Origin: Mobula hypostoma
Lineage: Eukaryota
Direction: 5' to 3'
Assembly: GCF_963921235.1 (NCBI RefSeq)
Contig: NC_086103.1
Coordinates: 72,726,001-72,790,000 of the forward strand
Length of the DNA: 64,000 nt
Below are positions 15,031 to 60,283 of this stretch, piece after piece. The notes beneath the pieces are model-generated. The model had not been told where the DNA came from, made no database searches, and saw nothing but the letters and a program-made list of their open reading frames with translations. Numbering within the stretch: position 1 is the stretch's first letter; every line of letters starts with the position of its first letter. The position numbers and the translations under genes were made by a program.

Positions 15031-15482
15031 GGTTGTAAAAAGAGATGGAAATGAGCCATTAGGAGAAGGCAATAGTGAACTGTTCAGTATGGTAGGGCTG
15101 GAAGAACTGATCTTCATTTTCTATTTCTGCTGTGAAATGTTGACAAATAAGAGAATGTGAGACAGCTGGAGCTGTAATGTGTTCTGAAATGCAATGGAAC
15201 CCATCACAAGCCTTTCAGAGAAGATCAACATAAGTTATCTACAAAAGAGCAGAAGATCTGCTGGACAGATGCTCAGGAATTATTGCTAAGAGCTAGCTGT
15301 GCAGCTCAATATCATGGAGAATGCTCCAAGGATGTAAATGCTGTGAGAAAGATGAATTATTTCCCAAGTTGAATCTTATACTGGTATATCCATCCATGTG
15401 GCTATTAGTGTCATTGTTTGTACAATAAACCCTGACGCACAGATGAAGCATCTCCATTGCACAGTCCTCAACACTTCAATTC

Positions 15483-16776
15483 TGTCATGGTCCGGTCCGT
15501 GAAGTCTATATTCCAGTTCACGGTCCAGTCCATCAAACCCTTGCTCCAGGTTTTTCTGTCTACCCTGTTTCTGTTCCTGTTGAACACTAATTGAGGCAGC
15601 TGATGCTCGTTGGGGCTGGCTGCATAAATACCTTCAGAGACCAGGGCGTGGCTGCTGGATTGTTCTTGTCCTTACTCCTTGTATCCCTTCCCCTGCCTTC
15701 TCTTTCCTGGTCTGAAGCCCTGCCTTGTCTTGCCAGTAACTCTCGCCTCACCTGAAGTTCTGTATTGCCTTGCATTGCCTGAAGCCTTGCCTTGTCTTGC
15801 TGTCTTGTCCTGGAGCCACCCCGTACCTAGCTCCCTTCCTGTCCCTTGCCTCCGCCAGGTAAGTCAGGCCGTTTTGCCATTACCCTGCGGTTGGTTCTGT
15901 CCTTCCTGTTCCTAGCCTCCCTCGGGTAAGCCAGGCCATTTTGCCGTTACCTGCGGTTGGTTCTGTCCCTTCCTAACCCTTGCCTCTGTCGGGTAAGCCA
16001 GGCCGTCTTGCCTTTACCTGCAGTTGGTTCTGTCCCTTCCTGTCCCTTTCCTCTGTCGGGTGGAGAACCATGCCCTGCCCAGGAGAACCACACCCTGCCC
16101 AGGGGAACTGCACCCTGCCCAGGAGGAGCCTCCAGCCTCCAGCCCCAAGCCTCGCCTCAAGTCTCCAGCCTCCTGCCTAGCCTGAAGCCTGAAGACTCCA
16201 GCCTCCTGCCTAGCCTCAAGCCTGAAGACTCCAGCCTCTTGCCTATCCTCAAGGCTGAAGACTCCAGACTCCTGCCTAGCCTCAAGCCTGGACTCCAGCC
16301 TCCTGCCTAGCCTCAAGCCTGAAGACTCCAGCCTCCTGCCTAGCCTCAAGCCTGAAGACTCCAGCCTCCTGCCTAGCCTCAAGCCTGAAAATTCCAGCCT
16401 CCTGCCAAGCCTCGCCTCGAGTCTCTAGCCTCTAGCCTCAAGCCTGAAGACTCCAGCCTCCTGCCTCCTGCCAAGCCTCGCCTCGAATCCCTAGCCGCTA
16501 GCCTTAAGACTCCAGCCTCGTCCTGCCTGCCAGCCAAGCCTCGTCCTTGCCTAGTTCTGGGGTCCGAGCCAGAGGCAAGACCCAGGTACTGGGTCCTTGT
16601 CCAGTCTCTGGCTCGGAGTCCAAACCCGGGCTCCTAGCTCTCTTATCTAGTCCTGTTCCGGGTTCCCGGTTTTCGTGTCCATGTCCTTGCCCTCACCCTA
16701 TATCCAAGTCCTGTCCCTAGTACTTCAGTGTCTGTGTCTTGCACTTGGGTCCGTTCCCAGCCACCTCCGTATGACA
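15483..16776 (+). mobile_element. Solo LTR of a Tf1/sushi-like Gypsy family with an internal minisatellite
   Basis: TGTCAT...ATGACA inverted termini, 5-bp TSD AATTC (15478-15482 and 16777-16781), same family as the LTRs of 49852-52398. Confidence 0.92.
16163..16411 (+). repeat. 33-bp minisatellite, 7 units plus a partial unit, inside the LTR
   Basis: Unit CTCCAGCCTCCTGCCTAGCCTCAAGCCTGAAGA; one unit is 31 bp; no spacers. Confidence 0.95.
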
Positions 16777-16839
16777 AATTCAAAAGATTTACCTCACCTT
16801 CATGCACTGAGCCCAGGTGCAAACTCACTAATTACGCAT

Positions 16840-19891: not shown

Positions 19892-20639
19892 ATGGAAACA
19901 GATGATGAATTCCCAGTCACTTTGGATTCAATCAGTGACTTCCTTAAACGGCAAAAACTGGAATTTTCTGAGGAGTTTCCACAACTTAATGGCAAATTGG
20001 ATATAATCCAACAAACTTCAACTGAGCGTGAGAACCAAATTCAGGAAAATACTGCAAAGCTGTTGACTCTTGAAGAGGATGTTGAAGATACAATTAATCT
20101 CTGCAAAGAGTTATTTATTCAATGAAAAATTGATGCAAAGGATTATCAATCTAGAAAATAGAAATAGGAGAAATAATCTGCAAATTCTGGGTCTTGAAGA
20201 ATCAATTGAAGGCACTGACCCTACGAAGATCATTGCAAACTTTCTGAAGCAGCTATTCCCTGTTTTATTCACTTCTGAGCCTAAGCTTGATCGAGCATAT
20301 CGCTCACCGACTTCGAAGCCACTGTCGTCGGCAGCAAGACCTAGCTCGGTCATTCTAAATTTTCATGACTTTCGTATTAAGGACCTTTTAATTCGCTATA
20401 CCCGTCAACAAGGAATGATCGATTTCCACGGTTACAAGGTCAGATTTGTGGCGGACTATTCGCCTGAAGTTATAGCTGATTGTATGAAATATAAAGAAGT
20501 TATGTTGGAACTTTACAATAAAGGATTTCAACCATCTCTTCGTTTTCCCACCTGTCTGAGTATTGTTTTAAAGAATGGATTGCAAAATAGAATAAAGTCA
20601 GTTGAAGACGCAAAAGAGATTCTGAAGGCTGAAGTCTAA
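19892..20639 (+). pseudogene. L1 ORF1p (coiled coil, RRM, CTD), one frameshift
   Basis: LENRNRRNNLQILGLEESIEG..LDRAYR..VILNFHDF..VRFVADYSPE..F.PSLRFP. Confidence 0.88.
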
Positions 20640-21360: not shown

Positions 21361-24300
21361 ATTATAATACTTTATTATTATACTTTATACTTTATTGTCA
21401 CCAAACAATTGGTACTAGATCGTACAATCATCACAGTGATATTTGATTCTGCGCTTCCCACTCCCTGGATTACAAATATTAAATATTAAAAATAGTTAAA
21501 ATCAGTAAATATTAAAAATTTAAATTATAAATCATAAATAGAAAATAGAAAAATGGGAAGTAAGGCAGTGCAAAAAAACTGAGAGGCAGGTCCGGATACT
21601 TGGGGGGTACAGCCCAGATCCGGGTCAGGATTCGTTCAGCAGTCTTATCACAGTTGGAAAGAAGCTGTTCCCAAATCTGGCCGTATGAGTCTTCAAGCTC
21701 CTGAGCCTTCTCCCAGAGGGAAGAAGGACGAAAAGTGTGTTGGCTGAGTGGGTCGTGTCCTTGATTATCCTGGCAGCACTGCTCCGACAGCGTGTGGTGT
21801 AAAGTGAGTCCATGGATGGAAGAATGGTTTGTGTGATGTGCTGCGCCGTGTTCACGATCTTCTGCAGCTTCTTTCGGTCTTGGACAGGACAACTTCCATA
21901 CCAGGTTGTGATGCACCCTAGAAGAATGCTTTATACAGTGCATCTATAAAAATTAGTGAGGGTTTTAGGGGTCAGGCCAAATTTCTTTAGTTTTCTCAGG
22001 AAGTAAAGGCGCTGGGGGGCCTTCTTGGCAGTGAACTCTGCTTGGTTGGACCACGTCAGGTCATTTGTGATTTTGACCCCAAGGAACTTAAAGCTTTTGA
22101 CCTGTTCCACTTGCGCACTACCGATGTAAATTGGGTCGTGCGGTCCACTACTCCTTCAGAAGTCAACAACCAATTCCTTCGTCTTGCTGATGTTGAGGGA
22201 TAGGTTATTATCTTTGCACCATGCCACCAGGTTCTTAATTTCCTCTCTGTACTCAAACTCATCATTACCCAAGATACGGCCTACAATTGTTGTGTCATCA
22301 GCAAACTTATATATTGAGTTTGATGGAAACTTGGCTGCACAATCATGGGTGTACAGTGAGTACAGCAGGGGGCTGAGTACACAGCCTTGTGGGGCACAGG
22401 TGCTCAGAGTGATTGTAGAGGAGAGCTTGTCCCCTATTTTTACAGCCTGGGTCCTGTCTGTGAGGAAATTGAAGATCCAGCTGCAGATCTGAGTGCTAAG
22501 GCCCAGGTTCCGGAGCTTAGGAATCAGTTTATTTGGAATGATGGTATTAAAGGCAGAGCTGTGGTCAATGAAAAGGAGCCTTACGTATGCATCTTTATTC
22601 TCCAGGTGTTCTAAGGAGGAATGTAGGGCCAGAGAGATGGCATCTGCCATTGACCTGTTGCTTCGGTAGGCGAATTGCAAAGCGTCGAGGTTGACCGGTA
22701 GGCTGTGGTTGATGTGTGCCATAACCAATCACTCGAAGCACTTCATAGCAATTGATGTCAGAGCCACAGGTCGATAGTCATTCAGGCATGCCACCTTGCT
22801 CTTCTTCGGCACTGGGATTATCGTTGCCTCCTTAAAACACGAGGGGATCTTAGACTGAAACAAGGAGCATTTGAAGATGTCAGCAAACACTCCAGCTAGC
22901 TCGCTTGCACAGGCCCAGAGAACCCGTCCTGGGACACCACCTGGGCCCGTCACCTTCCTTGGGTTTATCTTCAGGAAGGCCCTTCTAACATCCCTCGGTG
23001 ACGATGAATCTCCATGCCACCAGGTCCAGTTCATCTGGAGGGAGCGGGACGCTCCTGTTCTGTTCGAATCTTGCATAGAATACGTTAAGTTCGTCAGGAA
23101 GAGAAGCACCACAGTTATTGATATTCCCAGCCTTTTCTTTGCACCCAGTGATCTCATTTAGACCCTGCCATAGTGTATTGGCGCCCCTTTGGTTAGCCTA
23201 GGCTTCCAACTTGGCTCAATATTGCCTCTTGGTGCCCGTAATGGCTTTTCGGAATCCACGCCTGGATTCCGTGTAGCGACTGGTATCCCCGGACCTAAAA
23301 GCCGCAGCTCCAGCCTTTAAAATGGACTTGATCTCATAATTCATCCAAGGTTTCCGGTTAGGGAATACCCGGATCATCTTGCGAGACACACAGTCCTCCG
23401 TGCATTTCCAAATAAAGTCCGTGACAGTTGAGGCATACTCATCAAGGTTAGCTGCCGAGTCCTTGAATACTAACCAGTTCACCGATTCAAAGCAGTCACA
23501 GAGGACCTCATCCGTTTCCTCCGTCCAACGCGACACTACTTTTGACACCGTGACCTCCCACTTCAGTTTCTGTTTGTAAGCCGGGAGGAGGAGTACGGCC
23601 TGATGGTCCGATTTTCCGAAGTGAGATCGTGGGATGGAACAATAGGCATCCTTGACTGCTGTGTTGCAGTGGTCAAGTATATTCGGGCCTCTAGTGGGGC
23701 AGGAGACATGTTGGTATAACTTTGGCAGTGCCTTTCTGAGGTTGGCCTGGTTAAAATCCCCGGCTGTAATGAGCAAAGCCTCCGGATACCTGGTCTCAAG
23801 TTCACTGATGTTGGCATACAGTATGTTCAGAGCACATTCCACGTCCACCTGGGGGGGAATGTAGACCGCTGTCGGTATGACCGAGGTGAATTCCCGTGGC
23901 AGATAGTAGGGATGACACTTCACCGACAGGTTTTCCAGGTCCGGGCTGCAGGAACTTGTCAGTGCCACTGTGTCCCAGCACCACCCAGTGTTGATCAGTA
24001 GGCAGACACCACCTCCCCTCGTCTTGCCTGAAGACACCGTGCAGTCCATCCGATGGATCGAAAATCCCTCCGGTCGGATGGCACAGTCGGGGGTGGCAGG
24101 GTAGGGCCAGGTCTCGGTGAAACAGAATACACAGCAGTTCTGCATCTCCCTGCAGTAGGTGAGTCTCCCTTTAAGATTATCCACCTTGTTCTCTATGGCT
24201 TGCACATTAGCTAGTAGGATGGTGGGCATAGGGACCCTGAAGCCCCTCAGCTTCAATCTGACCAGTAGCCCAGCTCTTTTTCCACGCTTCCTCGGTAAGT

Positions 24301-32699: not shown

Positions 32700-33120
32700 T
32701 GTCACAAGGGGATGGCTGGAAACAGACCCAAGTGCAAGACACAGACACTCAAATTCAAAAAACAGGACTTGACTAGAGTAGAGACGTGACAGGATTCAGG
32801 CAAGGAGCAGGGACAAGAACCCAGTCTTGGGCTAGGGAAAGCGGGACCAGGTCTAGGAACCATGGACTAGGAGACAAAGCTTGGACTCTGAGCCCGAGAC
32901 TGGACAAGGACCCAGAACCTGGGTCTTGAACTTGGCAAGGACATGACATGGCTTCAGGACAGGACATGGCTGGGGTCTAGAGGCCTGAGCTTGGAGACAG
33001 GCTGCGGGCTCATAGAGGCTGGGGTTCTTGCATCTTGAGCTTGGCTGCGGGCTCGTCGAGTCTGGGGTTCTTGCGTCTTGAGCTTGGCAGTGGGATCGTC
33101 GAGGCTGGGGTTCTTGCCCA
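32700..33120 (-). mobile_element. 3' portion of a sushi-like LTR related to the 15483 family
   Basis: TGTCAC terminus; reverse complement of the LTR U5 end (TGTGTCTTGCACTTGGGTC). Confidence 0.8.
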
Positions 33121-34550
33121 GTGAGGGCCTGCCTTCACAACACCATTTGACACAGACACAGCCATCTCAGGATACTTTTCCTGCTCACACTTGCCATATC
33201 TGACCTGTGTTTATCATACCATCTACTCCAGCAATCTTGGTTAGGTGGGGAAATCACTAATCAAGACCTTCCAGTTAAACAGATGGTATGTAGGGAAATA
33301 CCAGTCCTTAACGCACTTACCCCACTGGGGCTATTAAGGCCAAAGTCCCTTAAGGCTGTTACCATACTATGGGTTGAGTTTGGCTGGAATAGACTACTCC
33401 CTCCCAGCTCCCCCCAGACCCCCAGAATAGAATGTCAAAACCTGAGAAGCTAGATGATTTCACCCGACAGTCTTTTTCCTCATCATCGCAGTGTAGTAAG
33501 GAGTCCTCATACAGATCCAGCAAGCTGGCACATTGGTCCAGTGTGTAATTTCCACACTATTCTCAGGAATGTATCACAGGGTCTCCTACCACAAGTTAGC
33601 GTTCACTACTTTGTCATTCTGTAATGCAAGGAGATACAAACACACTCGCTCCTGATTAGTCATTGGATATTTAGGCACAAAAAACACAAAACAACAACTT
33701 TTAGAATTGTTCCCCAAATGCTTGTTTCCCCCTGGAATGTAAACATCTCATATCCAGAATAAAGATGCTCAAATTTCTACCTCATTAACCCAAATTCCAC
33801 ATGGCCAGTATGAACTGTGGGGTTATTGCCAAAGCCAATTGCATGGGAAATGAATAAGCAACAAACTAAAAACACAGACAAGACAAACAAAAATACAGAT
33901 TTGTACTTAATTTCCTTAAGAAACTTGGCATGGAACTGCAAAACTTAAAACAAAACGTTAATTCCCATGGGGGGGGGGAACACACTTATCGGAGAACAAG
34001 CGGAAAGAAAAGTCTGGACAGAGCCCAACACATTCAGTCTCTAAAGGCAAAGCCTTCACTCATCTCTCCACAATCAAACCATTCACACTCTACTTACATG
34101 GAAGAGGGATGCAAGCCAAATGCCCCCCCCCCCCAATGCCTTCAGCCATGGATGTCAGCCATAGCCCTTTGCAATGCCTCTAGCTCAGCATATAGGGAAT
34201 GTTGAATGAAATGTGAGGAATCCAGCAGAGGACAAAAGGAGCCCTTATCAGGAGAGGGCTTGAAGAATGGCCCTTCCAAATTAATGGCCTCCTTTCCTCA
34301 CTTTCATTGGCTGGACTCCCTCAAAGTTGCTTAGCGTATGGGAGAAGGAACCCATTTACCTGTTCCTTTGGGATCCCAGCTTTTAGCAACGCCAGAAGCA
34401 TTTCCTTATGAGTCAGGAGGGACCCTCCACTCACGGTCTGCTTATCCAACTTCCATACCTGGTTATGCACATCCTTTTCTGCATACCTCAAACCCTGCCA
34501 CAATTACATCGCTGTACTTAGAGGACAACCATAATCTGGTCCTATTAAAG

Positions 34551-34690
34551 ACAGTCAGCTCTGATGAAGGGTTTTTGGTCTGAAACATTGAATGTTCACT
34601 CTTTTCCACAGGTGCTGCCTGGCGTGCTCAGCTCCTCCAGCTTTTTACGTGTTGCAATGGATTTCCAGCATCTGCAGATTTTCTCATGTT
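34551..34690 (+). mobile_element. Penelope-like terminal fragment with degenerate hammerhead core, inserted in the ERV gag
   Basis: CTGATGA (34561-34567)..GAAA (34582-34585), followed by GCTGCCTGG..CTCCAGC..GATTTCCAGCATCTGCAG. Confidence 0.7.
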
Positions 34691-35929
34691 TCTGATATTA
34701 CCCCTTTTAAATGGGAAGCCAGAGCCATAACCAGGTGCCCTATCATGGCAGAGGTTCATTCAACCTCCTCTGGCAGGTTATCACTACCATTGTATAGTTC
34801 TGTAATAAGAGCCCTCTGGCAAAGGGCTTTAGTGCCTCTCTCTACTGTGCTCCATTCTGCCCAGGGTTTTAAATCCCTTTCAAAGAGAGAAGGATATGTG
34901 AATCTGACCAATGCTGCTACTTGATGCTACAATGACACATTATGCTCAGTGGAAGCAAGCAGTGTTCTCAGTGTGTTATTGATCACGTGTTGGGACACTA
35001 AGCTCTCCATTAGATAGGCTCTCTCTGGTACCTCCCTCATCCCATATCTTCAACAACCATGTGGCCAAAGACTCTTCAGGCTTCTCTAAACTCGCCAGTT
35101 CTTTAGCAGAGAACTCCCTGGTCTCTGTTGTCTCGAAGGGAGCAGTTAACACGTTGCTGACTCTTCTTCTCTTCCTCTACCTCCTGGGAGAAAGAAGCCG
35201 TGAGCCAATGCTACCCATGGCAGGTATAGGACTGCATGATCACTGGCCTCGCTCGTACTGTTTTGGGAACACAAGCAATAATTTAGAGAGTGAATCCTAG
35301 GAGACTACTCCACCCTCTCTTCTTCATTTTCTCCATCCAGCCAGACATCCCCATCTCCCATCCATGCAGTAGGATCATTGCCCCACCACCACATCAAAGC
35401 TCAAACCTTAACAGGATCGATTTGCCAATTAGCCCACCAGGCAGCCCCTAATTGCTCTACCTTCATTAGCCGACAATCTCTGTATTCTTATCTTCTGATT
35501 TGCAGACCAGCTCTTGGCCATCAGCAGTCCTTCTCTCATAATGATACAGCACTAATTTAGCTCTTCAGCCTCATTTTTAAGACCCTAGGTCATGTTGTGC
35601 AGGTGCTTTATGATGGCTGTAAACAGCCAGAGAGCATCCCACCAGCTATCCTTTCTCCTAGGACATCCTAGTGTTTTAAGTTGTGGATACAATATGTTAT
35701 CCAGTTTTAACGCCGTGAAAATCTAGGTGGTCTGACCAATCTATTATCATCCTGTAACCCATTGGTAGGTTTGTGAGACTTCCATAGCCTCACTGTTATC
35801 CGTCCACCCAGGGACTCGACATTGCTCATACCGGGCGGGTGGGGGCGGGGCGGTCCTCTCGCTTAAATGACCTTCTAAAGAAATGCATTTTCTGCTCAAA
35901 TCAGCAAATCATGCCAAAGCAGCTCCGAA

Positions 35930-36387
35930 TGTAATGTGGAAGCAGGTTCATGGGTTTGGTGAGCGAGACAGAAGACAGTGACTGAAAATAAGCACATTAA
36001 TCTTTATTCACAAACAGCAAAAGATTCTACCAAACATCTATGTCCCTCAGAGTTACGCAAACTACAAAACTAAATATTCAACAAACAGATACTGAACTAA
36101 GACTGTGCGTGGAGCATACCTTCCCAATCATTCCATGAGCCATGCCCTGGGGACAAAGGAAAGAAAACAGAGCAAACCTCCCACACTTGCTATTTGATAC
36201 CCCCTGAGGTGCCCGGAACCAGAAATAGGTGCCATGGTGCGCAAGACAACCAATGGGAAAGAGCGGCTACAAACATTAAATGGACCAATCACTGACCAAC
36301 GCAGTAAAAACAGCTTTCGACTGGCAAATAAGCCACACCCCCACGTGACACAGGCTTGAGCTGGTACTTGCCCCTCATAAAATTACA
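35930..36387 (-). promoter_or_regulatory. LTR of the ERV-like element
   Basis: TGTAAT...ATTACA inverted termini; in minus-strand order two CCAAT boxes (~36250, ~36285), TATA-like TATCAAATAG (~36190) and AATAAA (36003-36008). Confidence 0.75.
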
Positions 36388-37214: not shown

Positions 37215-40200
37215 CAGTACCCCTATGGCTATACCCCTTGACAATAAGTACTCCTGCTTGAGTACTGTTGGGGGGGGGGCAGCCTACCTGGGGGAAGCAA
37301 CAGTGGCCGTGCCCCTGGCACAGAGTCTGGCCCTGTGGCTCAGAAGGGCAGGGAAAGGAAGAGGAAGACAGCAGTGATAGGGGACTCTATAGATAGGGGG
37401 TCAGGCAGGTGATTCTGTGGATGCAGGAAAGAAACTTGGATGGTAGTTTGCCTCCCAGGTGCCAGGGGCTGGGATGTTTCAGCTCACGTCCAAGATATCC
37501 TGCAGTGGAAAGGAGAACAGCCAGAGGTTGTAGTACATATTGGTACCAATGACATAGGTAGGAAAAGGGAAGAGGTCCTGAAAACAGACTACAGGGGGAT
37601 AGGAAGGAAGTTGAGAAGCAGGACAGCTAAGGTAGTGATCTCGGGATTACTGCCTGTGCCACGTGACAGTGAGTATAGGAATAGAATGAGGTGGAGGATA
37701 AATGCGTGACTGAGGGATTAGAGCAGGGGGTGGAGATTCAGATTGCTGGATCATTGGGACCTCTTTTGGGGCAGGTGTGACCTGTACAAAAAGGACGGGT
37801 TGCACTTGAATCCCAGGGGGACCAATATCTTGGCAGGGAAGTTGCTAAGGCTACTGGGGAGAGTTTAAACTAAAATTGTTGGGGGGTGGGAACCGAGCTG
37901 AAGAGAGTGAGGAAGAGGCGGTTGGCTCACAAATAGAGAAACCTTGGAGGAAGTGTGCGAGGGAGGATAGGCAGGTGATAGAGAAGGGACGCACTCAGAC
38001 CAACGGTTTGGGAAGTGTCTATTTTAACACAAGGAGTATTGTGAGCAAAGCAGATGAGCTTCGAGCGTTGATCAGTATTTGGAGCTGTGATGTGGTGGCC
38101 ATTACAGACAGTTGGATGGCTCAGGGACAGGAATGGTTACTTCAAGTGCCAGGTTTTAGATGTTTCAGAAAGGACAGGGAGGGAGGCAAAAGAGGCGGGA
38201 GCATGGCACTGTTGATAAGAAATAGTGTCACAGCTGCAGAAAAGGTGGACGTCATGGAGGGATTGTCTATGGAGTCTCTGTGGGTGGAGGTTAGGAACAG
38301 GAAGGGGTCAATAACTTTACTGGGTGTATTTTATAGGCCGCCCAATAGTAACAGGGATATCGAGGAGCAGATAGGGATACAGATCTTGGAAAGGTGTAAT
38401 AATTACAGAGTTGTTGTGACGGGAGATTTTAATTTCCCAAATACTGATTGGCATCTCCATAAAGCAAGGAGTTTAGATGGGGTGGAGTTTGTTAGGTGTG
38501 TTCAGCAAGGTTTCTTGACACAATATGTAGATAAGCCTACAAGAGGAGAGACTGTACTTGATTTGGTATTGGGAAATGAACTTGGTCAGGTGTCAGATCT
38601 CACAGTGGGAGAAAAGCGTTTAATTGGATTAAGGTGAATTATCAGGCTATCAGGCAGGAAATTGGAAGCTTAAATTGGGAAAAAATGTTCTCAGAGAAAA
38701 GCAGGGAAAAAATGTGGCAAATGTTCAGAAGATATTTGTGTGGAATTCTGCATAGGTACATTCCAATGAGACAAGGAAGTAAGTTATGGTGGGATACAGG
38801 AACCGTGGTATACAAAGACTGTAATAAATCTAGTCAAGAAGGAAAGAAAAGCTTGCAAAAGGTTCAGAGATCTAGGTAATGTTAGAGATCTAGAAGATTA
38901 TAAGGCTAACAAGAAGGAGCTTAAGAAGGAAATTAGGAGAGCCAGAAAGGGCCATGAGAAGGCCTTGGCAGGTAGGATTAAGGAAAACTCCAAGGCATTC
39001 TACAAGTATGTGAAGAGCAAGAGGATAAGATGTGAAAGAATAGGACCTATCAAGTGTGACAGTGGGAAAGTGTGTATGGAACCAGAGGAAATAGCAGAGG
39101 TACCTAATGAATACTTTACTTCAGTATTCACTATGGAAAAGGATCTTGGTGATTGTAGAGATGACTTGCAGAGGACTGAAAAGCTTGAGCATGTAAATAT
39201 TAGGAAAGAGGATGTGCTGGAGCTTTTGGAAAGCATCAAGTTAGATAAGTCGCCGGAGCAGGATGAGATGTGCCCCAGGTTACTGTAGGAGGCGAGGGAG
39301 GAGATTGCAGAGCCTCTGGCGATGATCTTTGTATCATCAATGGGGACAGGAGAGGTTCCGGAGGATTGGAGGATTGCAGATGTTGTTCCCTTATTCAAGA
39401 AAGGGAGTAGAGATAGCCCAGGAAATTATAGCCCGGTGAGTCTTACCTCAGTGATTGGTAAGTTGACAGAGAAGATCCTGAGAGGCAGGATTTATGAACA
39501 TTTGGAGAGGTATCATACGATTAAGAATAGTCAGCATGGCTTTGTCAAGGGAAGGTCGTGCCTTACGACCCTGATTGAATTTTTTGAGGATGTGACTAAA
39601 CACATTGATGAAAGAAGAGCAGTAGATGTAGCGTATATAGATTTCAGCGACGCATTTGATAAGTTACCCCATACAAGGCTTATTGAGAAAGTAAGGGGGC
39701 ATAGAATCCAAGGGGACATTGTTTTGTGGATCCAGAACTCGCTTGCCCATAGAAGGCAAAGAGTGGTTGTAGACGGGTCATATTCTGCATGGAGGTCTGT
39801 GACCTGTGGTGTGCCTCAGAAATCTATTCTGGGACCCTTACTCTTCGTGGATTTTTATAAATGAAATGGATGAGGAAGTGGAGGGATGGGTTAGTAAGTT
39901 TGCTGATGACACAAAGGTTGGAGGTGTTGTGGATAGTGTGGAGGGCTGTCAGAGGTTACAGCGGGACATTGATACGATGCAAAACTGGGCTGACAAGTGG
40001 TAAATGGAGTTCATCCCAGATAAGAGTGAAGTGGTTCATTTTGGTAGGTCAAATATGATGGCAGAATATAGTATTAATGGTAAGACTCTTGGCAGTGTGG
40101 AGGATCAGAGGGATCTTAGGGTCCGAGTCCATAGGACACTCAAAGCACCTGCTCAAGTTGACTCTGTGATTAAGAAGACATATGGTGTATTGGTCTTCAT

Positions 40201-40810
40201 CAATCGTGGAATTGAATTTAGGAGCCGAGAGGTAATGTTGCAGCTATATAGGGCCTTGGTCAGACCCCCCTTGGAGTACTGTGCTCAGTTCTGGTCGCCT
40301 CACTACAGGAAGGATGTGGAAGCCATAGAAAGGGTGCAGAGGAGATTTACAATGCTGTTGCCTGGATTGGGGAGCATGCCTTATGAGAGTAGGTTGAGTG
40401 AACTTGGCCTTTTCTCCTTGGAGCGACGGAAGATGAGAGGTGACCTGATAGAGGTGTATAAGATGATGAGAGGCATCGATTGTGTGGATAGTCAGAGGCT
40501 TTTTCCCAGGGCTGAAATGGTTGCAACCAGAAGACACAGGTTTAAGGTGCTTGGGAGTAGGTACAGAGGAGATGTCAGGGGTAAGTATTTTTTTACGCAG
40601 AGAGTTGTCAGTGCGTGGAATGGGCTGCTGGTAATGGTGGTGGAGGCAGATACGATAGGGTCTTTTACGAGACTTTTAGATCGGTACATGGAGCTTAGAA
40701 AAATAGAGGGCTATGGGTAAGCCTGGTAATTACTAAGGCAGGGACATGTTCGGCACATCTTTGTGGGCCGAAGGGCCTGTATTGTGCTATAGGGTTTCTA
40801 TGTCTCTATG
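37215..40810 (+). mobile_element. CR1 LINE, 5'-truncated within ORF1 (esterase, APE, RT)
   Basis: VVCLPGAR..VVVHIGTND (SGNH); YFNTRSI..VAITDSW..GDFNFP (APE); QHGFVKGRSCLT..DFS.AFD..KFADDTK (RT); tail TTTCTATGTCTCTATG. Confidence 0.95.
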
Positions 40811-41850
40811 TTGTCAACCATGCCTCCCCCAGAGCGTCACACTGTTCCCACCCGAGGGGTCAGCCGTCATCGGCAACCCCAGGGTCCATGACAATGTCCA
40901 AAAGTCTCAGTGGCATCGACACTGCCGTCTGTTCGTGTGAGGCAGGAGGCAGGACACCTGGAGTGTCACTTCCTTCCTTCAGACTCACTGGGTCAGCGGT
41001 GGCCAAGAGCTGACACGGTGTCAGCCGGTCCCGGTGCAGCACGACTGCCTTCCGCCGCTCAGGCAACCGCACCTGATATACCACATCGGAGAGGCTGTCA
41101 AGCACCTCTCCTGGCCCCTTCCAGTGGCTTCCCAGCCTGGGGGATCGTCCTTTCTTCCGAGAGGGGCCCCCACCAGGTACTGCTGCATTGGCGCCCTAGA
41201 CTGGCGGCCCAGTCCCTTCTAGGACACGCAAGCATTGCAGAAGTGCAAACAGCTCCACGTCCCGCCTGTACCCAGGCCAGTAAAAGCGTTCATGCAGCCT
41301 GCCCTTCCCTCGCAACGCCGTACAGTCGCGGGTGACCGTAGCCAGTTGGACGGCCGTTGTTGTTCACCCAGGTGGGGAAGGCTGGTCCGTGTTAGGGGGA
41401 ACACCAGGACGGATGATGGTGATGGTTGACCTCGTGTCCACCAACACACGGCACCTGATGCCCTCCCCTATGCAGTCCATGTATGAGCCCTGCTCTTCAA
41501 CTAAACGGCCCACCCGGAGGGGCAATAGCGGAGGGATTCTGCTTGAGGTCTCGGATGGCAATGCCCGGTCGGTATTTCCCAATGGTTGCCTTGAGCTGTG
41601 GTGCCGGTACGGGGCAGTCCCGGGCCAAATGACCTGCCTCACCGCAGCGGTAGCCGAGATCGTTTCGTGGCCCGCGGCAGTGGTCGGACCTGTCTCACGG
41701 GCTCCTCCACGTCAGTTTCCTCTTCAGTGTCGGTGACACAACCTCGGTCTCGCTGCCTGCGGGGCGATGCTGGACCACAATGGGGGGACTAAAATTGCTT
41801 CTGCCTTCTCCGCCTCGGCTAGCTCCCCAGAGCGTCACAGTATTATGACG
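40811..41850 (-). mobile_element. Internally deleted Ty3/Gypsy fragment (protease and integrase C-terminus)
   Basis: GIRCRVLVDTRSTITIIRPG (degenerate DTG protease); W.GP..LDSLSDVVYQVRLP..VVLHRDRL (GPY/F region). Confidence 0.75.
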
Positions 41851-49339: not shown

Positions 49340-49851
49340 CAAGTTTATATCTCTAGGATGTTACAGAAGTTACTTTGTCTCCATTTGTTCTAATCAGCAC
49401 GTGTCCGCAGCCGCTAAAAGGACATGTGAGGAGCGTTTGGCAGCTTTGGGCCTGTACTCACTGGAATTTGGAAAAATGTGGGAAGAAATCATTGAAAGCT
49501 ACAGAATGTTGAAAGGACTAGATAGGGTGGATGTGGAGCGGATGTCTCCTCCGATGGGAGCACAGCCTCAAGATTCAGGGTGACTCTTTACAACAGCGGT
49601 AAGGAGGAATTTTTTTTAGCCAGAGAGTAGAAGATCTGTGTAATGCTCTGCCACAGACTCCAGCAGAGGCCAAGTCTGTGCATATATTTAAGGCAGAAGT
49701 TGATCACTTCTTGATTGGTCAGGGCATCACAGGATATGGCGAGAAGGCAGGTGTATGAGGTTAAGTGGGATTCTTGATCAGCCATGATAGAATGGCGAAG
49801 CAGGGTCAATGGGCTGAAAGGCCTCATTCTGCTCCTATGTCTTATGGTTTT
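49340..49851 (+). mobile_element. CR1 3' fragment
   Basis: EERLAALGLYSLEF..ESYRMLKGLDRVDVERM; CR1 3' UTR. Confidence 0.85.
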
Positions 49852-52398
49852 TGTCATGGTCCAATCTGTGAAGTCCTCATTCCGGTTCATCAACCCTTGC
49901 TCCAGGTTTTCCTGTCTACCCTGTTTCTGTTCCTGTTGAGCGCTAATTGAGGCAGCTGATTCTCGTTGGGGCTGGCTGCATAAATACCTCCAGAGAGCAG
50001 GGCGTGGCTGCTGGATTGTTCTTGTCCTTACTCCTTGTATCCCTTCTCCTGCCTTCTGTTTCCTTGCCTGAAGCCTTGCCTTGTCTTGCTGGTAACTCTC
50101 GCCTCGCCTGAAGTTCTCACCTTGCCTTGCATTGTCTGAAGTCTTGCCTTGTCTTGCTGGTAACTCTTGCCTCGCCTGAAGTTCTTACCTCGTCTTGCAT
50201 TGCCAGAAGCCTTGCCTTGTCTTGCTGGTAACTCTCACCTCGCCTCGCCCGAAGTTCTTGTCTCGCCTTGCATTGCCTGAAGCCTTGCCCTGTCTTGCCG
50301 GTAATTCTTGCCTCGCCTCGCCTGAAGTCTTGTCTTGGAGCCACCCTGTATCTAGGACCCTTCCTGTCCTTTGCCTCTGCCAGGTAAGCCAGGCCAGATT
50401 GCTGTTACCCTGCAATTGGTTCTGTCCCTTCCTGTCCCTTGCCTCCATCACGCGGAGATCCGCGCCCTGCCCAGGTGATCCGCACCCTGCCCAGGAGTAC
50501 CGCGCCCTGCCCAGGAGGAGCTTCAAGACCCCAAGCCTCCAGCCAAGCCTCGCCTCAATACTCTGGCCTCACCTCACCTCAAGACTCTGGCCGAGCCTCG
50601 CCTCAAGTCTCTAGCCGAGTCTCGCCCCAAGCCAAGCTTCAAGACCCCAAGCCTCAAGCCTCACCTCAAGTCTCTAGTCTCAAGTCTAGAGACTTGAGTC
50701 CCCAGCCTCGCCTCAAGTCTCTGGTCCCCAGCCTCGCCTCAAGTCTCTGGCCTCAAGCCTCGACTCAAGTCTCTGGTCTCAAGCCTCGCCTCAAGTCTCT
50801 GGTCCTAATCCTTGCCTCAAGTCTCTGGTCTCAAGCCCCTGGTCTCAAGCCTCACCTCAAGTCTCTGGTCCTAAGCCTTTCCTCAAGTCTCAAGCCTCGC
50901 CTCAAGTCTCAAGCCTGAAGACTCCAGCCTCGTCCTGCCTGCCAGCCAAGTCACGTCCTTGCCTAATTCTGGGGTCCGAGCCAGAAGCAAGACCCAGATT
51001 CTGGGTCCTTGTCCAGTCTCTGGCTTGGAGTCCAAACCCTGGCTGCTAGCTCTCTTGTCCTGTCCTGTTCTGGGTTCCCAGTTTTTGTGTCCATGCCCTA
51101 GCCCTCACCCTGTATCCTAGTCTTGTCCCTAGTACTATGTGTCTTGCACTTGGGTCTGTTCCCAGCCACCTCCCTATGACAGAACAATCCAACCAACCAT
51201 GGACCCAGTGACACAGACACTATCATTTTCCTTTTGCCACCCAGGGTTTTCTTCTGTGAAATACCCTCCCACCTGCCCGGGTCATCCATAGTCTGGATAG
51301 CTTGTTTGGTCACCTGGAGGCTCCCATAGAGCGGGGGACTGTCATGGGCTGGTCCGTGAAGTCCGCATTCTGGTTCACGGTCCGGTCCATCGACTCTTGC
51401 TCCAGGTTTGCCTGTCTACCCTGTTTCTGTTCCTGTTGAACACTAATTGAGGCAGCTGATTCTCGTTGGGGCTGGCTACATAAATACCTCCAGGGTGTGG
51501 CTGCTGGATTGTTCTTGTCCTTACTCCTTGTATCCCTTCCCCTGCATTCTGTTTCCTTGCCTGAAGCCTTGCCTTGTCTTGCCGGTAACTCTTGCCTTGC
51601 CTCGCCCGAAGTTCTTATTTCGCCTTGCATTGCCTGAAATCTTGCCTTGTCTTGCCGGTAATTCTTGCCTCGCCTTGCCTGAAGTCTTGTCTTGGAGCCA
51701 CCCTGTATCTAGGTCCCTTCCTGTCCTTTGCCTCCGCCAGGTAAGTCAGGCCAGATTGTCGTTACCCTGCAGTGGGTTCTGTCCCTTCCTGTCCCTTGCC
51801 TCCATTGGTTGGAGATCCGTGCCCTACCCAGGTAATCCGTGCTCCCAGGAGGAGCTTGAAGACCCCAAGCCTCTAGCCGAGCCTCGCCCCAAGCCAAGCT
51901 TCAAGACCTCAAGCCTCTGGTCCCCAGCCTCGCCTCAAGCCTCTGGTCCCCAGCCTCGCCTCAAGTCTCTGGCCTCAAGCCTCCCCTCAAGTAACTGATC
52001 TCAAGCCCCTGGTCTCTAGCCTTTCCTCAAGTATCTGATCTCAAGTGCCTGGTCTCTAGCCTCGCCTCAAGTCTCAGGTCTCTAGCCTTGCCTTAAGTCT
52101 CTAGCCTCGCCTCAAGTCTCCAGCCTGGAGAATCCAGCCTCATCCTGCCTGCCAGCCAAGTCACGTCCTTGCCTAGTTCTTGGGTCCGAGCCAGAGGCAA
52201 GACCCAGGTTCTGGGTCCTTGTCCAGTCTGTGGCTCGGAGTCCAAGCCCGGGCTCCTAGCTCTCTTGTCCAGTCCTGTTCCGGGTTCCTGGTTTTCGTGT
52301 CCATGTCCTTGCCCTCACCCTGTATCCTAGTCCTGTCCCTAGTACTTCAATGTCTCTGTCTTGCACTTGGGTCCATTCCCAGCCACCTCCTTACGACA
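49852..52398 (+). mobile_element. Complete non-autonomous two-LTR element (Tf1/sushi-like): 5' LTR 49852-51181, internal 51182-51339, 3' LTR 51340-52398
   Basis: TG...CA on both LTRs, 5-bp TSD GTTTT (49847-49851 and 52399-52403), gag-like start ATGGACCCA (51199), purine tract AGAGCGGGGGA (51328-51338). Confidence 0.93.
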
Positions 52399-52410
52399 GT
52401 TTTATGTTAT

Positions 52411-52545
52411 GTACAGTTCTGATGAAGGGTCTCAGCCCAAAACCTCAACTGTACTCTTATCCATAGATGCTGCCTGGCCAGCTGAGTTCCTCCAGCAATT
52501 TGTGTGTGTTGCTTGGATTTGCAACATCAGCAGATTTTCTTTTGT
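52411..52545 (+). mobile_element. Penelope-like terminal fragment with a minimal type I hammerhead fold (52411-52454)
   Basis: Stem I GTACAGTT/AACTGTAC, core CTGATGA, stem II GGG/CCC, core GAAA mutated to AAAA. Confidence 0.75.
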
Positions 52546-52559
52546 TTCCCATGTAAGTT

Positions 52560-53830
52560 CTGGCTGGCCTGTCTCAAGTTCTAGATTCCTCAGTCAGGGA
52601 AAACACCTTCCTTGCATTTTTTCTGCCAAGTTCGTGAAGGTTTTTGTATGTTTTTTTGAAGTTGAAGAGAGTACAATCCCAATCTACTCAATATCTTCTC
52701 ATTTAGAAACACTACCAATCCTGAATTGTTATTGCACTCTGCCAATGGCAATTGCATCCTTTCTTAGGTAAGAGGTCAAAACGGTCCTCTATATTCTAGG
52801 GTGCTTTTTCCAAGCCATTCTACAAGAACAACATGACTTGCTCATTGCTGCAGTCAGATTCTCTTGTAAACGATAATCTACCATTTGCACCTACATCAGA
52901 CTTTGGTCTCTATAAACTTTAACACTGCCTTATCACTGCCATTTAATAATTAATTCATTTTTATATTCATTGTACCAGAATGGATAAGCTTTGAATTTTT
53001 TCACATTGTATTCCATTTGTCATTTTCTTGCCCTGTCACTGAGCTTGTTTATATAACCTTGCAGCCTCTTCACATCCTGCTTTGTGCTCCCAATCCCTCT
53101 TGGTCTAACACTATTGGAAAATGCAGAATATATAACTCGTTCCCTCATATATTTCATTGCATCTCAGTCCTGAATGATGATGCCTTATTTTGAGATTTTG
53201 AGATGATGATCCCTACAGGCAAAGTATCTCTTACACCTGCCCTTTGAAGCCCTCTCAGAATTATATACATTTCAATCAGTTCTCCTCCTATTCATCTGAG
53301 CTCTGCTGTGTATCAACATTTATTTCTTCTGATCCAAGTCTTTTTTATCTGCCTATTGGTATACTAAGCTTTCAGTGACCATGTACACAGACACCCAGGT
53401 TCTTTGAATACCCAATCACTCCACCATATAACAAAAACCTGTTTTTCTGATGTTCCTACTGAAGTGGATCATGTCACATTTCTCTACATTATATTCTATT
53501 CGGCATCTCCTTGTCTATTTAGCCACTCTTCCCTGTCCCGCTGATTTCTCCTTGCATTCTCTGGAAATCTCACACAGTTAATTACCTATTGTTAAATCTT
53601 GGAAATGTTGCCCTTCAGCTAACTCTTTGATATATGTTATGAAGAGAAGAGGGTCCAACCCTATGACTATGGATCTCAACCACTTGCAGTTTCCTAACTC
53701 AAGCTTATTCCATCTGTTTTCTCTGTTAACCAATGCAGATTTCAAAATTAACCCCAGTCCAATGTGTTCTAATCACCTCTAACTGTGGCAGTTTAAAAAT
53801 CCTCCAGTGGTCAAAATGCTTAATATCCAC
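52560..53830 (-). mobile_element. Old degraded CR1 LINE RT fragment
   Basis: Patchy CR1 motifs on the minus strand (ORF 53726-53965 FDHWRIFKLP; GCAATTGCATCC; TACAAGAACAACATGAC). Confidence 0.5.
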
Positions 53831-54527: not shown

Positions 54528-54960
54528 TGTCATCTGGGGGGCATTGGTAGTGGACCGAAATGCAAGACACAGACACTGAAGTACTAGGAACAGGACTCTG
54601 TGTGTCAAGAAAGCAGGGGATGTGGGGAAGAAAGGACGCTGGACATTGACACAGGCCCTGGACAAGACTAGGGTGCAGGGCCTGGTCTAGGACATGGACA
54701 AGAAACATGGAACCTGGACAAGGAACTTGGACCAAGGAGCCTGGACTAGGGACAAAGGACTCCAGAACTAGAGCCCGGACAAGGACCCAGAACCTGGGTC
54801 TTGGTGGGGACTAGGAACCTTGGAGCCTTGGGCTTGGAACTCAGGAACATGGAACACAGAGCTGGGATCCCTCCTTGGAAACAGGACCAGGGGCCGGGGC
54901 TCTTTCTATACACAGAACACTGAACACAAAGAGACAGTTCTCCACTCAGGGTAGCGGCAA
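54528..54960 (-). mobile_element. 3' portion of a sushi-like LTR related to the 15483 family
   Basis: TGTCAT terminus; reverse complement of U5 block GTACTTCAGTGTCTGTGTCTTGCA. Confidence 0.75.
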
Positions 54961-57900: not shown

Positions 57901-60283
57901 ACCCCAAGGCATTCTTCAATTATGTGCAGAAAAAAAGGATGACAGGAGTGAAGGTAGGACCGATTAGAGATAAAGGTGGGAAGATGTGCCAGGAGGCTAT
58001 GGAAGTGAGCGAGGTCCTCAATGAATACTTTTCTTCGGTATTCACCAATGAGAGGGAATTTGATGATGGTGAGGACAATATGAGTGAGGTTGATGTTCTG
58101 GAGCATGTTGATATTAATGGAGAGGAGGTGTTGGAGTTGTTAAAATACATTAGGACAGATAAGTCCCCGGGCATGACGGAATATTCCCCAGGCTGCTCCA
58201 TGAGGCGAGGGAAGAGATTGCTGAGCCTCTGGCTTGGATCTTTATGTCCTTGTTGTCCACGGGAATGGTACCGGAGGATTGGAGGGAGGCGAATGTTGTC
58301 CCCTTGTTCAAAAAAGGTAGTAGGGATAGTCCGGGTAATTATAGACCAGTGAGCCTTACATCTGCTGGAAAGCTGTTGGAAAAGATTCTTAGAGATAGGA
58401 TCTATAGGCATTTAGAGAATCATGGTCTGATCAGGGACAGTCAGCGTGGCTTTGTGAAGGGCAGATCATGTCTAACAAGCCTGATAGAGTTCTTTGAGGA
58501 AGTGACCAGGCATATAGATGAGGGTAGTGCAGTGGATGTGATCTATATGGATTTTCGTAAGGCATTTGACAAGGTTCCACACGGTAGGCTTATTCAGAAA
58601 GTTAGAAGGCGTGGGATCCAGGGAAGTTTGGCCAGGTGGATTCAGAATTGGCTTGCCTGCAGAAGGCAGAGGGTGGTGGTGGAGGGAGTACATTCAGATT
58701 GGCGGATTGTGACTAGTGGTGTCCCACAAGGATCTGTTCTGGGACCTCTACTTTTCCTGATTTTTATTGATGACCTGGATGTGGGGGTAGAAGGGTGGGT
58801 TGGCAAGTTTGCAGATGACACAAAGGTTGGTGGTGTTGTAGATAGTGTAGACAGTTGTCGAAGATTGCAGAGAGACATTGATAGGATGCAGAAGTGGGCT
58901 GAGAAGTGGCAGATGGAGTTCAACCCGGAGAAGTGTGAGGCGGTACACTTTGGAAGGACAAACTCCAAGGCAGAGTACAAAGTAAATGGCAGGATACCTG
59001 GTAGTGTGGAGGAGCAGAGGGATCTTGGGGTACATGTCCACAGATCCCTGAAAGTTGTCTCACAGTTGGATAGGGTAGTTAAGAAAGCTTATGGGGTGTT
59101 AGCTTTCATAAGTCGAGGGATAGAGTTAAGAGTCGCGATGTAATGATGCAGCTCTATAAAACTCTGGTTAGGCCACACTTGGAGTAATGCGTCCAGTTCT
59201 GGTCACCTCACTACAGGAAGGATGTGGAAGCATTGGAAAGGGTACAGAGGAGACTTACCAGGATGCTGCCTGGTTTAGAAAGTATGCATTATGATCAGAG
59301 ATTAAGGGAGCTAGGGCTTACTCTTTGGAGAGAAGGAGGATGAGAGGAGACATGGTAGAGGTGTACAAGATAATAAGAGGAATAGATAGAGTGGATAGCC
59401 AACGCCTCTTCCCCAGGGCACCACTGCTCAATACAAGAGGACATGGGTTTAAGGTAAGGGGTGGGAAGTTCAAGGGGGATATTAGAGGAAGGTTTTTTAC
59501 TCAGAGAGTGGTTGGTGCGTGGAATGCACTGCCTGAGTCAGTGGTGGAGACAGATACACTAGTGAAGTTTAAGAGACTACTAGACAGGTATATGGAGGAA
59601 TTTAAGGTGGGGGCTTATATGGGAGGCAGGGTTTGAGGGTCGGCACAACATTGTGGGCTGAAGGGCCTGTACTGTGCTGTACTATTCTATGTTCTATGTT
59701 CTATGTTAGCAGTCGGTTGAATCATGTTACTGATAAGAAGATGTTATGAACCAATTGCGGTAGTTGTTATGTTTTTGGTGTATCTGTAAGATATTGTATG
59801 CGCGGTGTTTTCGGGGAGAAGGCGGGAGAGAGAGACAGAGGATGGACCAGGTGCTGTGAATCCGCTAACGGAGTCGGACCCCGAGCGGGGCGTTTGGAGA
59901 GGAGACGGAGACGGACTCGTGTGGAGCATCTGGTCGACCACCGTTGTTGGTCCCAGGCGGCCAGGCGAGGTGGTCCGAGGGGTCGCAGGGTGAAGAAGAA
60001 GGGTCCTGAGCTCCAACTGTTTGTGCACAAAGAGATTGAACTTTGATAAGTGTGACGCCTTTGATTTTCCTTTTATATTTTATTCTCTATTAATTATATA
60101 GTTCCAGTAATATCTATAAACTGTAAATCACTTAATCGTATCTGGTGTATTGTCTGTTATTTGGACGGGGTGGGGTACATCACACAGCATCCACACAAAC
60201 TGTTACCCAGTTTGGCAGGGCTGAGGGCTGTTTCTCTAGGCGGCAGCGAGCCGAGCGACCCTGAGGCTGGCCGGGGGGCTACA
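54965..60283 (+). mobile_element. 3' end of a Gypsy element: pol tail, PPT and 3' LTR (55601-55686 plus 59707-60283) split by a CR1
   Basis: VPRSRRIRELSDRLAY tail; PPT GGTGGGGGGAGAG directly before TGTAAGG; LTR homologous to 9602-10292 and ending GGCTACA. Confidence 0.85.
55687..59706 (+). mobile_element. Near full-length CR1 LINE (ORF1 Cys/His finger, coiled coil, esterase; ORF2 APE and RT)
   Basis: CLSCKMW..HICQKC; VCCLPGARVRDV..HVGTND; YLNARNIRNK; QRGFVKGRSCLTSLIEFFE..SGVPQGSVLGP..KFADDTK; (TTCTATG)3 tail. Several stops and frameshifts. Confidence 0.96.

Follow-up and report, generated by a model that had tools for sequence, protein, structure and literature searches.

The fission-yeast elements Tf1, Tf2 and Tj1, which are Ty3/gypsy chromoviruses, prime their reverse transcription without a tRNA, the primer-binding site (PBS) adjoining the 5' long terminal repeat (LTR) and forming the complement of 11 nt with which the element's own RNA begins. 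To our knowledge, experiments have demonstrated this form of priming in the fission-yeast elements alone, whereas in vertebrates it has been inferred from sequence. Among Tf1/sushi elements, self-priming is common from fungi to vertebrates (PMC10085805, PMC4600332, PMC6317226), and it is predicted for the vertebrate representatives, namely, sushi-ichi of Takifugu and its relatives, in what PMC4600332 and PMC10085805 relay of Butler et al. 2001. In Tf1, it needs a three-duplex structure termed the 'pretzel', composed of a central primer/PBS duplex and two further duplexes in which sequence next to the PBS pairs with LTR sequence downstream of the primer (PMC10085805). In the present work, we describe an element with two LTRs located in a 64,000-nt stretch of Mobula hypostoma NC_086103.1, hereafter referred to as the window, within which all coordinates are given. 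In our judgement, this element is probably an ancient, inactive, internally deleted and non-autonomous Ty3/gypsy-type LTR retrotransposon with Tf1/sushi-like self-priming. The mechanism has already been described for the vertebrate Tf1/sushi group, and the element is thus a tidy example of it and not a new kind.

The whole element, read on the plus strand, measures 2547 bp. It consists of a 5' LTR of 1330 bp (49852-51181, TGTCA...TGACA), an interior of 158 bp (51182-51339) and a 3' LTR of 1059 bp (51340-52398), which is a direct copy of the 5' LTR; both also align with a solo LTR present elsewhere in the window. Both LTRs start with TGTCATGG, and the ends read (T/C)GACA. A target-site duplication (TSD), GTTTT, is found as an identical 5-mer on the left (49847-49851) and on the right (52399-52403). 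The interior, which starts with GAACAATCCA at its 5' side, has no coding capacity upon inspection of its open reading frames (ORFs), and it terminates with AGAGCGGGGGAC (51328-51339), a polypurine-like tract read from the sequence, whose position against the 3' LTR suggests its function. The possibility of two neighbouring solo LTRs was considered and rejected, since the PBS and the polypurine tract lie exactly at the inner LTR edges and a single TSD surrounds the whole. Minisatellite arrays with units of 68, 20, 24 and 26/14 bp occupy positions 50064-50916 of the 5' LTR, and differences in minisatellite copy number account for most of the length gap between the LTRs (1330 versus 1059 bp). Outside the minisatellites, the 5' LTR, the 3' LTR and the solo LTR are about equidistant, with 90% to 92% pairwise identity. 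As the two LTRs of the element are no more similar than this, the insertion is ancient. What it has kept are cis signals alone, that is, two long minisatellite-filled LTRs, a PBS, a short leader and a polypurine tract.

The feature that points to self-priming is a complementarity between the junction of the 5' LTR with the interior and the LTR itself. The putative PBS, AGAACAATCCA (51181-51191), which is made of the last LTR base and the first 10 interior nt, is the exact reverse complement of the putative self-primer TGGATTGTTCT (50012-50022), and the complement, with the last LTR base included, has a length of exactly 11 nt. At a distance of 32 nt upstream of the 11-mer stands ATAAATA (49980), the only TATA-like motif of the LTR, contained in CATAAATA (49979-49986), which also comprises a CATAAA hexamer and is present in all three LTR copies. 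The same spacing of 32 nt is found in the solo LTR (from 15624 to 15656), and in the 3' LTR, where the 11-mer corresponds to 51505-51515, 7 nt are missing between the two, so that the spacing is 25. The 24 nt around the LTR/interior junction were tested against shuffles of the LTR in which dinucleotides were preserved, and 10 of 5000 shuffles contained a complement of at least 11 nt (p about 0.002), the position of the match being ignored in this test. The 11-mer belongs to a 43-nt run (50004-50046) that is invariant across the three LTR copies; this run is only marginally unusual, since about 0.1 such runs are expected according to a rough estimate. Further, with a decay of about 4-5% per copy, the probability that both 11-mers have stayed intact since insertion is about 0.4, and a perfect match today is therefore unremarkable. 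With regard to the predicted RNA structure, nucleotides 1-11 pair with the PBS in both the minimum free energy and the centroid folds of a 1204-nt RNA (50012-51215), and the probability of this pairing is about 0.86 in the ensemble of a 1249-nt RNA, which the C/U-rich LTR strand, having few rival partners to offer, helps to explain. The interval of 1.17 kb between the two 11-mers is made up to about 57% of minisatellite arrays. Taken as a whole, these data support an LTR-to-PBS complementarity that is statistically unusual and of the Tf1/sushi kind.

No sign of a tRNA primer accompanies this complementarity. The first TGG (51200) appears 19 nt into the interior, none being present within 18 nt of the LTR, and by eye no complement to a tRNA 3' end is recognisable after the TGG at 51200. 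In addition, the window contains no tRNA gene, and the region gives no Rfam match. An element of the endogenous retrovirus (ERV) type with a tRNA primer was consequently rejected, as the TGG-type PBS is absent. A sequence-only reading of this stretch had already pointed to the two LTRs, the TSD and the 158-bp interior, to the exact complement, to the 32-nt spacing shared with the solo LTR and the 7-nt deletion in the 3' LTR, to a loop of about 1.17 kb largely made of minisatellite, and to the lack of a tRNA-type TGG PBS, and all of these were recovered in our analysis. Its overall proposal, a non-autonomous two-LTR element with cis signals and a self-priming signature, stands as far as the anatomy, the complement and the predicted pairing are concerned, whereas two labels attached to it, a miniature type and a gag remnant, were abandoned for the reasons given below.

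By analogy with Tf1 and the Tf1/sushi group, the element likely relied on self-priming, and the following sequence of events can be proposed. The RNA would start at about 50010-50013, a position predicted solely from the 32-nt spacing to the TATA-like motif, and would extend across R-U5, PBS, leader and polypurine tract into the 3' LTR. Its first 11 nt would fold back on the PBS, and the RNase H of a partner element would then cleave after nucleotide 11, as in Tf1, thereby freeing a 3'-OH able to prime minus-strand DNA synthesis. During plus-strand strong-stop synthesis, the primer would be copied into the PBS again. Because this last step would rewrite the complementarity in each cycle, it would account for a perfect match over 11 nt. 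All proteins would have to be supplied in trans by an autonomous relative located outside the window.

The locus shares with Tf1, Tf2 and Tj1 an 11-nt complementarity between the PBS, which adjoins the 5' LTR, and the start of the RNA (here a predicted start), the lack of a tRNA primer, a 5-bp TSD, and LTR ends of the TG...CA type. It differs from them in that no gag-pol or chromodomain is left, in that the complement takes in the last LTR base, and in its vertebrate host. With the vertebrate Tf1/sushi elements, it has in common both the type of host and a predicted self-priming in place of a tRNA PBS. These elements are autonomous and 5-6 kb long, and they possess a clear AATAAA near the LTR 3' end, whereas the locus described here is a 2.5-kb shell whose LTR lacks AATAAA. 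The integrase motif TGTYANR of sushi elements fits the 5' terminus of the element, TGTCATG (PMC3601003, Table 3), and the motif CNTNACA fits its 3' terminus, TATGACA, except at the first position (PMC3601003). The element is a putative member of the Tf1/sushi clade.

With regard to non-autonomous elements, the sequence-only reading had described the element as similar to TRIMs, the miniature terminal-repeat retrotransposons. TRIMs, including Helenus LTR-11_DR of zebrafish, likewise exhibit terminal direct repeats and a short non-coding interior running from PBS to polypurine tract, and depend on a partner for their proteins. However, they are smaller than 1 kb, with repeats of 100-250 bp and a PBS complementary to a tRNA (PMC6934838, PMC10886601), whereas the present element reaches 2547 bp, with LTRs of 1.06-1.33 kb and a self-complementary PBS. 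It is therefore too large for the TRIM definition, and is better described as an internally deleted, non-autonomous LTR element whose LTRs are giant. Other internally deleted LTR elements, namely, the large retrotransposon derivatives (LARDs) of plants and the mammalian apparent LTR retrotransposons (MaLRs), have also kept LTRs and cis signals and lost the coding region. Nevertheless, LARDs retain a long non-coding interior, compared with 158 bp here, and MaLRs are derived from ERV-L and carry a tRNA PBS. Internally deleted derivatives are often met in old families in which solo LTRs are in large excess, and the contig depths presented below indicate the same situation in this family.

The suggestion of a gag-like start in the interior did not survive closer inspection. 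The 30-codon ORF concerned (51199-51291, plus strand), which reads MDP...GHP followed by a stop, does exist, and there is no evidence that it derives from gag. An exhaustive phmmer search with its 30-residue product returned a single match, a 1684-residue bacterial RHS-repeat protein, which was rejected as spurious since many weak repeat matches add up to its score. The product of a 71-residue minus-strand ORF covering the LTR end, the PBS and the leader gave no candidate in a protein-word search. Scans of metagenome contigs for two exact patterns, one joining the LTR end to the PBS and the other the PBS to the leader, were both blank. Likewise, no autonomous relative was found in the window, where the ORFs bearing a reverse transcriptase are LINE-like (long interspersed nuclear element) or belong to other elements, and are not flanked by the LTR of the element.

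The abundance of the family was examined with Logan contigs from one DNA run for each of two species and from two putative RNA runs, placed on positions 49500-52750 at a likeness of at least 80%. Only a few of the approximately 217,000 pieces were looked at individually, and summed contig depth is not a copy number but indicates an order of magnitude only. Within this limit, the LTR is highly repeated in both species, its summed depth ranging from about 1e4 to 4e5 compared with about 75 in the flank bin that is least repetitive. The interior, too, is multi-copy in the two species over its first ~130 nt, but to a far lesser degree. At position 51249, at least 26 contigs of one species and at least 15 of the other carry C, compared with T in the present copy, with total depths of about 975 and 500, respectively. 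Two contigs of 177 and 166 nt (51141-51311 and 51150-51311, respectively) span the LTR end, the PBS and the leader, with an identity of about 87%. If the depth of 12-15x seen in the least repetitive contigs is used for calibration, the copies would amount, as an order of magnitude, to dozens for the leader versus thousands for the LTR. Of note, the element itself sits in a far more abundant interspersed repeat (49500-49851 and 52399-52551), with flank bins at 1e5 to 4e6. This repeat, which both species and also the putative RNA runs contain, has a summed depth of about 4.4 million in bin 52443-52551 versus about 75 in the next one. The flanking sequences seem to resemble common cartilaginous-fish repeats.

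These abundances bear on whether the shortened form was itself propagated. As an alternative, gag-pol may have been lost in place, once, by illegitimate recombination, in which case the 158-bp junction would be unique and no family of miniature parasites would exist. We regard this as a real possibility, though not the probable course of events. In the window, the interior occurs only once, the 90-92% identity of the LTRs leaves ample time for such a loss, and among the contigs listed, none bridges the leader and the 3' LTR, the longest interior contigs of both species ending at 51311, before the purine tract. However, this common stop proves nothing, because Logan contigs break at any branch point and those inspected are a handful of the total. 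The opposite proposal, namely, a propagated codon-free family in a cartilaginous fish that is still copied by Tf1-type self-priming across a loop of more than 1 kb of variable minisatellite, is made tentatively, and we consider it rather unlikely in this full form. If true, it would mean that self-priming tolerates kilobase loops and needs the central duplex only, and not the 'pretzel' helices required in yeast, and also that, in vertebrates, chromoviruses of the sushi type can be exploited by self-priming shells as parasites. More generally, a codon-free element with a primer/PBS pair represents a natural 'minimal substrate' and suggests which cis signals suffice for mobilisation in trans. 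A 1.17-kb loop with no detectable accessory helices bears on the amount of RNA structure that the mechanism requires. In practical terms, this family is abundant in at least two related species and will be overlooked or misclassified by annotation pipelines that rely on a tRNA PBS to find LTR elements. In other respects, the element does not stand out from ordinary decayed transposons, and nothing points to a function in the host.

Several observations weigh against a Tf1-type element of the kind proposed. While the central primer/PBS duplex of the 'pretzel' is predicted in the RNA fold of the element, the two accessory duplexes known from Tf1 were not detected: in the 140 nt scanned after the primer, the best candidates, at -14.1 and -15.2 kcal/mol, were not above shuffles (fractions at or below the observed value, 0.28 and 0.31, respectively). 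The loop of 1.17 kb, most of it minisatellite, is far longer than the 0.1-0.2 kb or so that separate primer and PBS in Tf1. No coding sequence survives in the element, neither one for an RT/RNase H/integrase phylogeny nor a C-terminal chromodomain, and its clade membership is thus putative. The putative RNA contigs cross position 50012 without a step in coverage, which is weak evidence as the RNA status of the runs was guessed, and the depth of RNA relative to DNA stays level from one end of the LTR to the other, which fits background or read-through as well as transcripts from the 3' LTR. Finally, CATAAA, that is, the TATA-like motif itself, is the sole poly(A)-like hexamer of the LTRs, neither AATAAA nor ATTAAA being present in any of the three copies; a CA follows 14-15 nt past it (49998-49999), and then comes GU-rich sequence containing the 11-mer, which might be a downstream polyadenylation element.

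These last features lead to a second alternative, in which CATAAATA is a polyadenylation signal and not a TATA box, with TGGATTGTTCTTGTCC, which is GU-rich, as the downstream element and RNA cleavage close to the CA at 49998-49999. U5 would accordingly contain the 11-mer, whose complementarity would serve another purpose, for example a long-range pairing of leader and LTR for packaging or the masking of 5' signals. A Tf1-type mechanism would fail in this case, because the strong-stop DNA would lack R. Such an arrangement would nonetheless reduce U3 and R to about 150 nt and leave them without a TATA box, and the motif is preceded, as in a core promoter, by TAATTG and CAGCTG sites that are perfectly conserved across the LTR copies. 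Moreover, the putative RNA contigs run unbroken from 49897 to 50058 and 50109, with no end near 50000. The block most conserved across diverged families is the GT-rich GTGTCTGTGTCTTGCACTTGGGTC near the LTR 3' end, the place at which sushi-type LTRs have their poly(A) region (PMC3601003). For these reasons, we consider a polyadenylation signal at this position improbable. As a separate observation, the plus strand of the LTR copies contains only about 15% A.

It is highly improbable that the 11-nt complement is coincidental and that a tRNA, a tRNA fragment or another RNA pairing with the leader served as primer. In favour of this reading, a match of 11 nt is not long, such a length is reached in about 0.2% of shuffles, the junction is one of very many LTR junctions inspected, and the accessory duplexes are unsupported. 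Against it, the match occurs exactly at the Tf1-type position, 32 nt past the TATA-like motif and flush with the LTR end, which the shuffle test left out of account, its duplex with the PBS dominates the predicted ensemble, and no TGG-initiated tRNA complement stands beside the LTR.

Among the other retroelements of the window, a LINE-like element (37876-41736, plus strand) comprises an endonuclease/exonuclease/phosphatase ORF (37876-38637) followed by reverse-transcriptase ORFs from 39322 onwards. Retroelement debris is located at 20070-20639 (plus strand), 22156-22728 (minus strand) and 58244-59143 (plus strand), none of it flanked by the LTR studied here, and includes two further ORFs with an RVT_1 reverse transcriptase, located on different elements, as well as a weak L1 ORF1-like match (Transposase_22, E = 9e-4, under the Pfam cut-off).

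With regard to LTRs, four further pieces had been announced in the window by the sequence-only reading, and we found three, one being the solo LTR and the other two LTR ends that are truncated and lie on the minus strand. The solo LTR (15483-16776, plus strand) belongs to the family of the two-LTR element and carries its TATA-like motif at 15624 and its 11-mer at 15656-15666. It is bordered by a TSD of its own, AATTC (15478-15482 and 16777-16781), which indicates that the family was mobile and made 5-bp target duplications. The second piece (32700-33120, minus strand) is a 5'-truncated LTR end of a related family, ending with ...GTGACA at 32700, and the third (54528-54830, minus strand) is a fragment of an LTR end from a family that is related more distantly, with ...GATGACA as its terminus at 54528. 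Both fragments were tested for a TSD and for a self-complement, and neither was found in either of them. The fragment at 32700-33120 loses its 5' side at about 33120, where an ERV-like gag/env on the plus strand (33121-36387) starts, which suggests that the ERV-like insertion is nested into the LTR fragment. The sole part kept across these hardly alignable LTR families is the GT-rich block, (AGT)GTCTGTGTCTTGCACTTGGGTC, situated about 25-50 nt before the LTR end. It is found at 16720-16751, 51130-51156 and 52340-52373, and on the minus strand at 32725-32760 and 54553-54590, and could be either a downstream element of polyadenylation or a signal in U5 that serves reverse transcription or integration.

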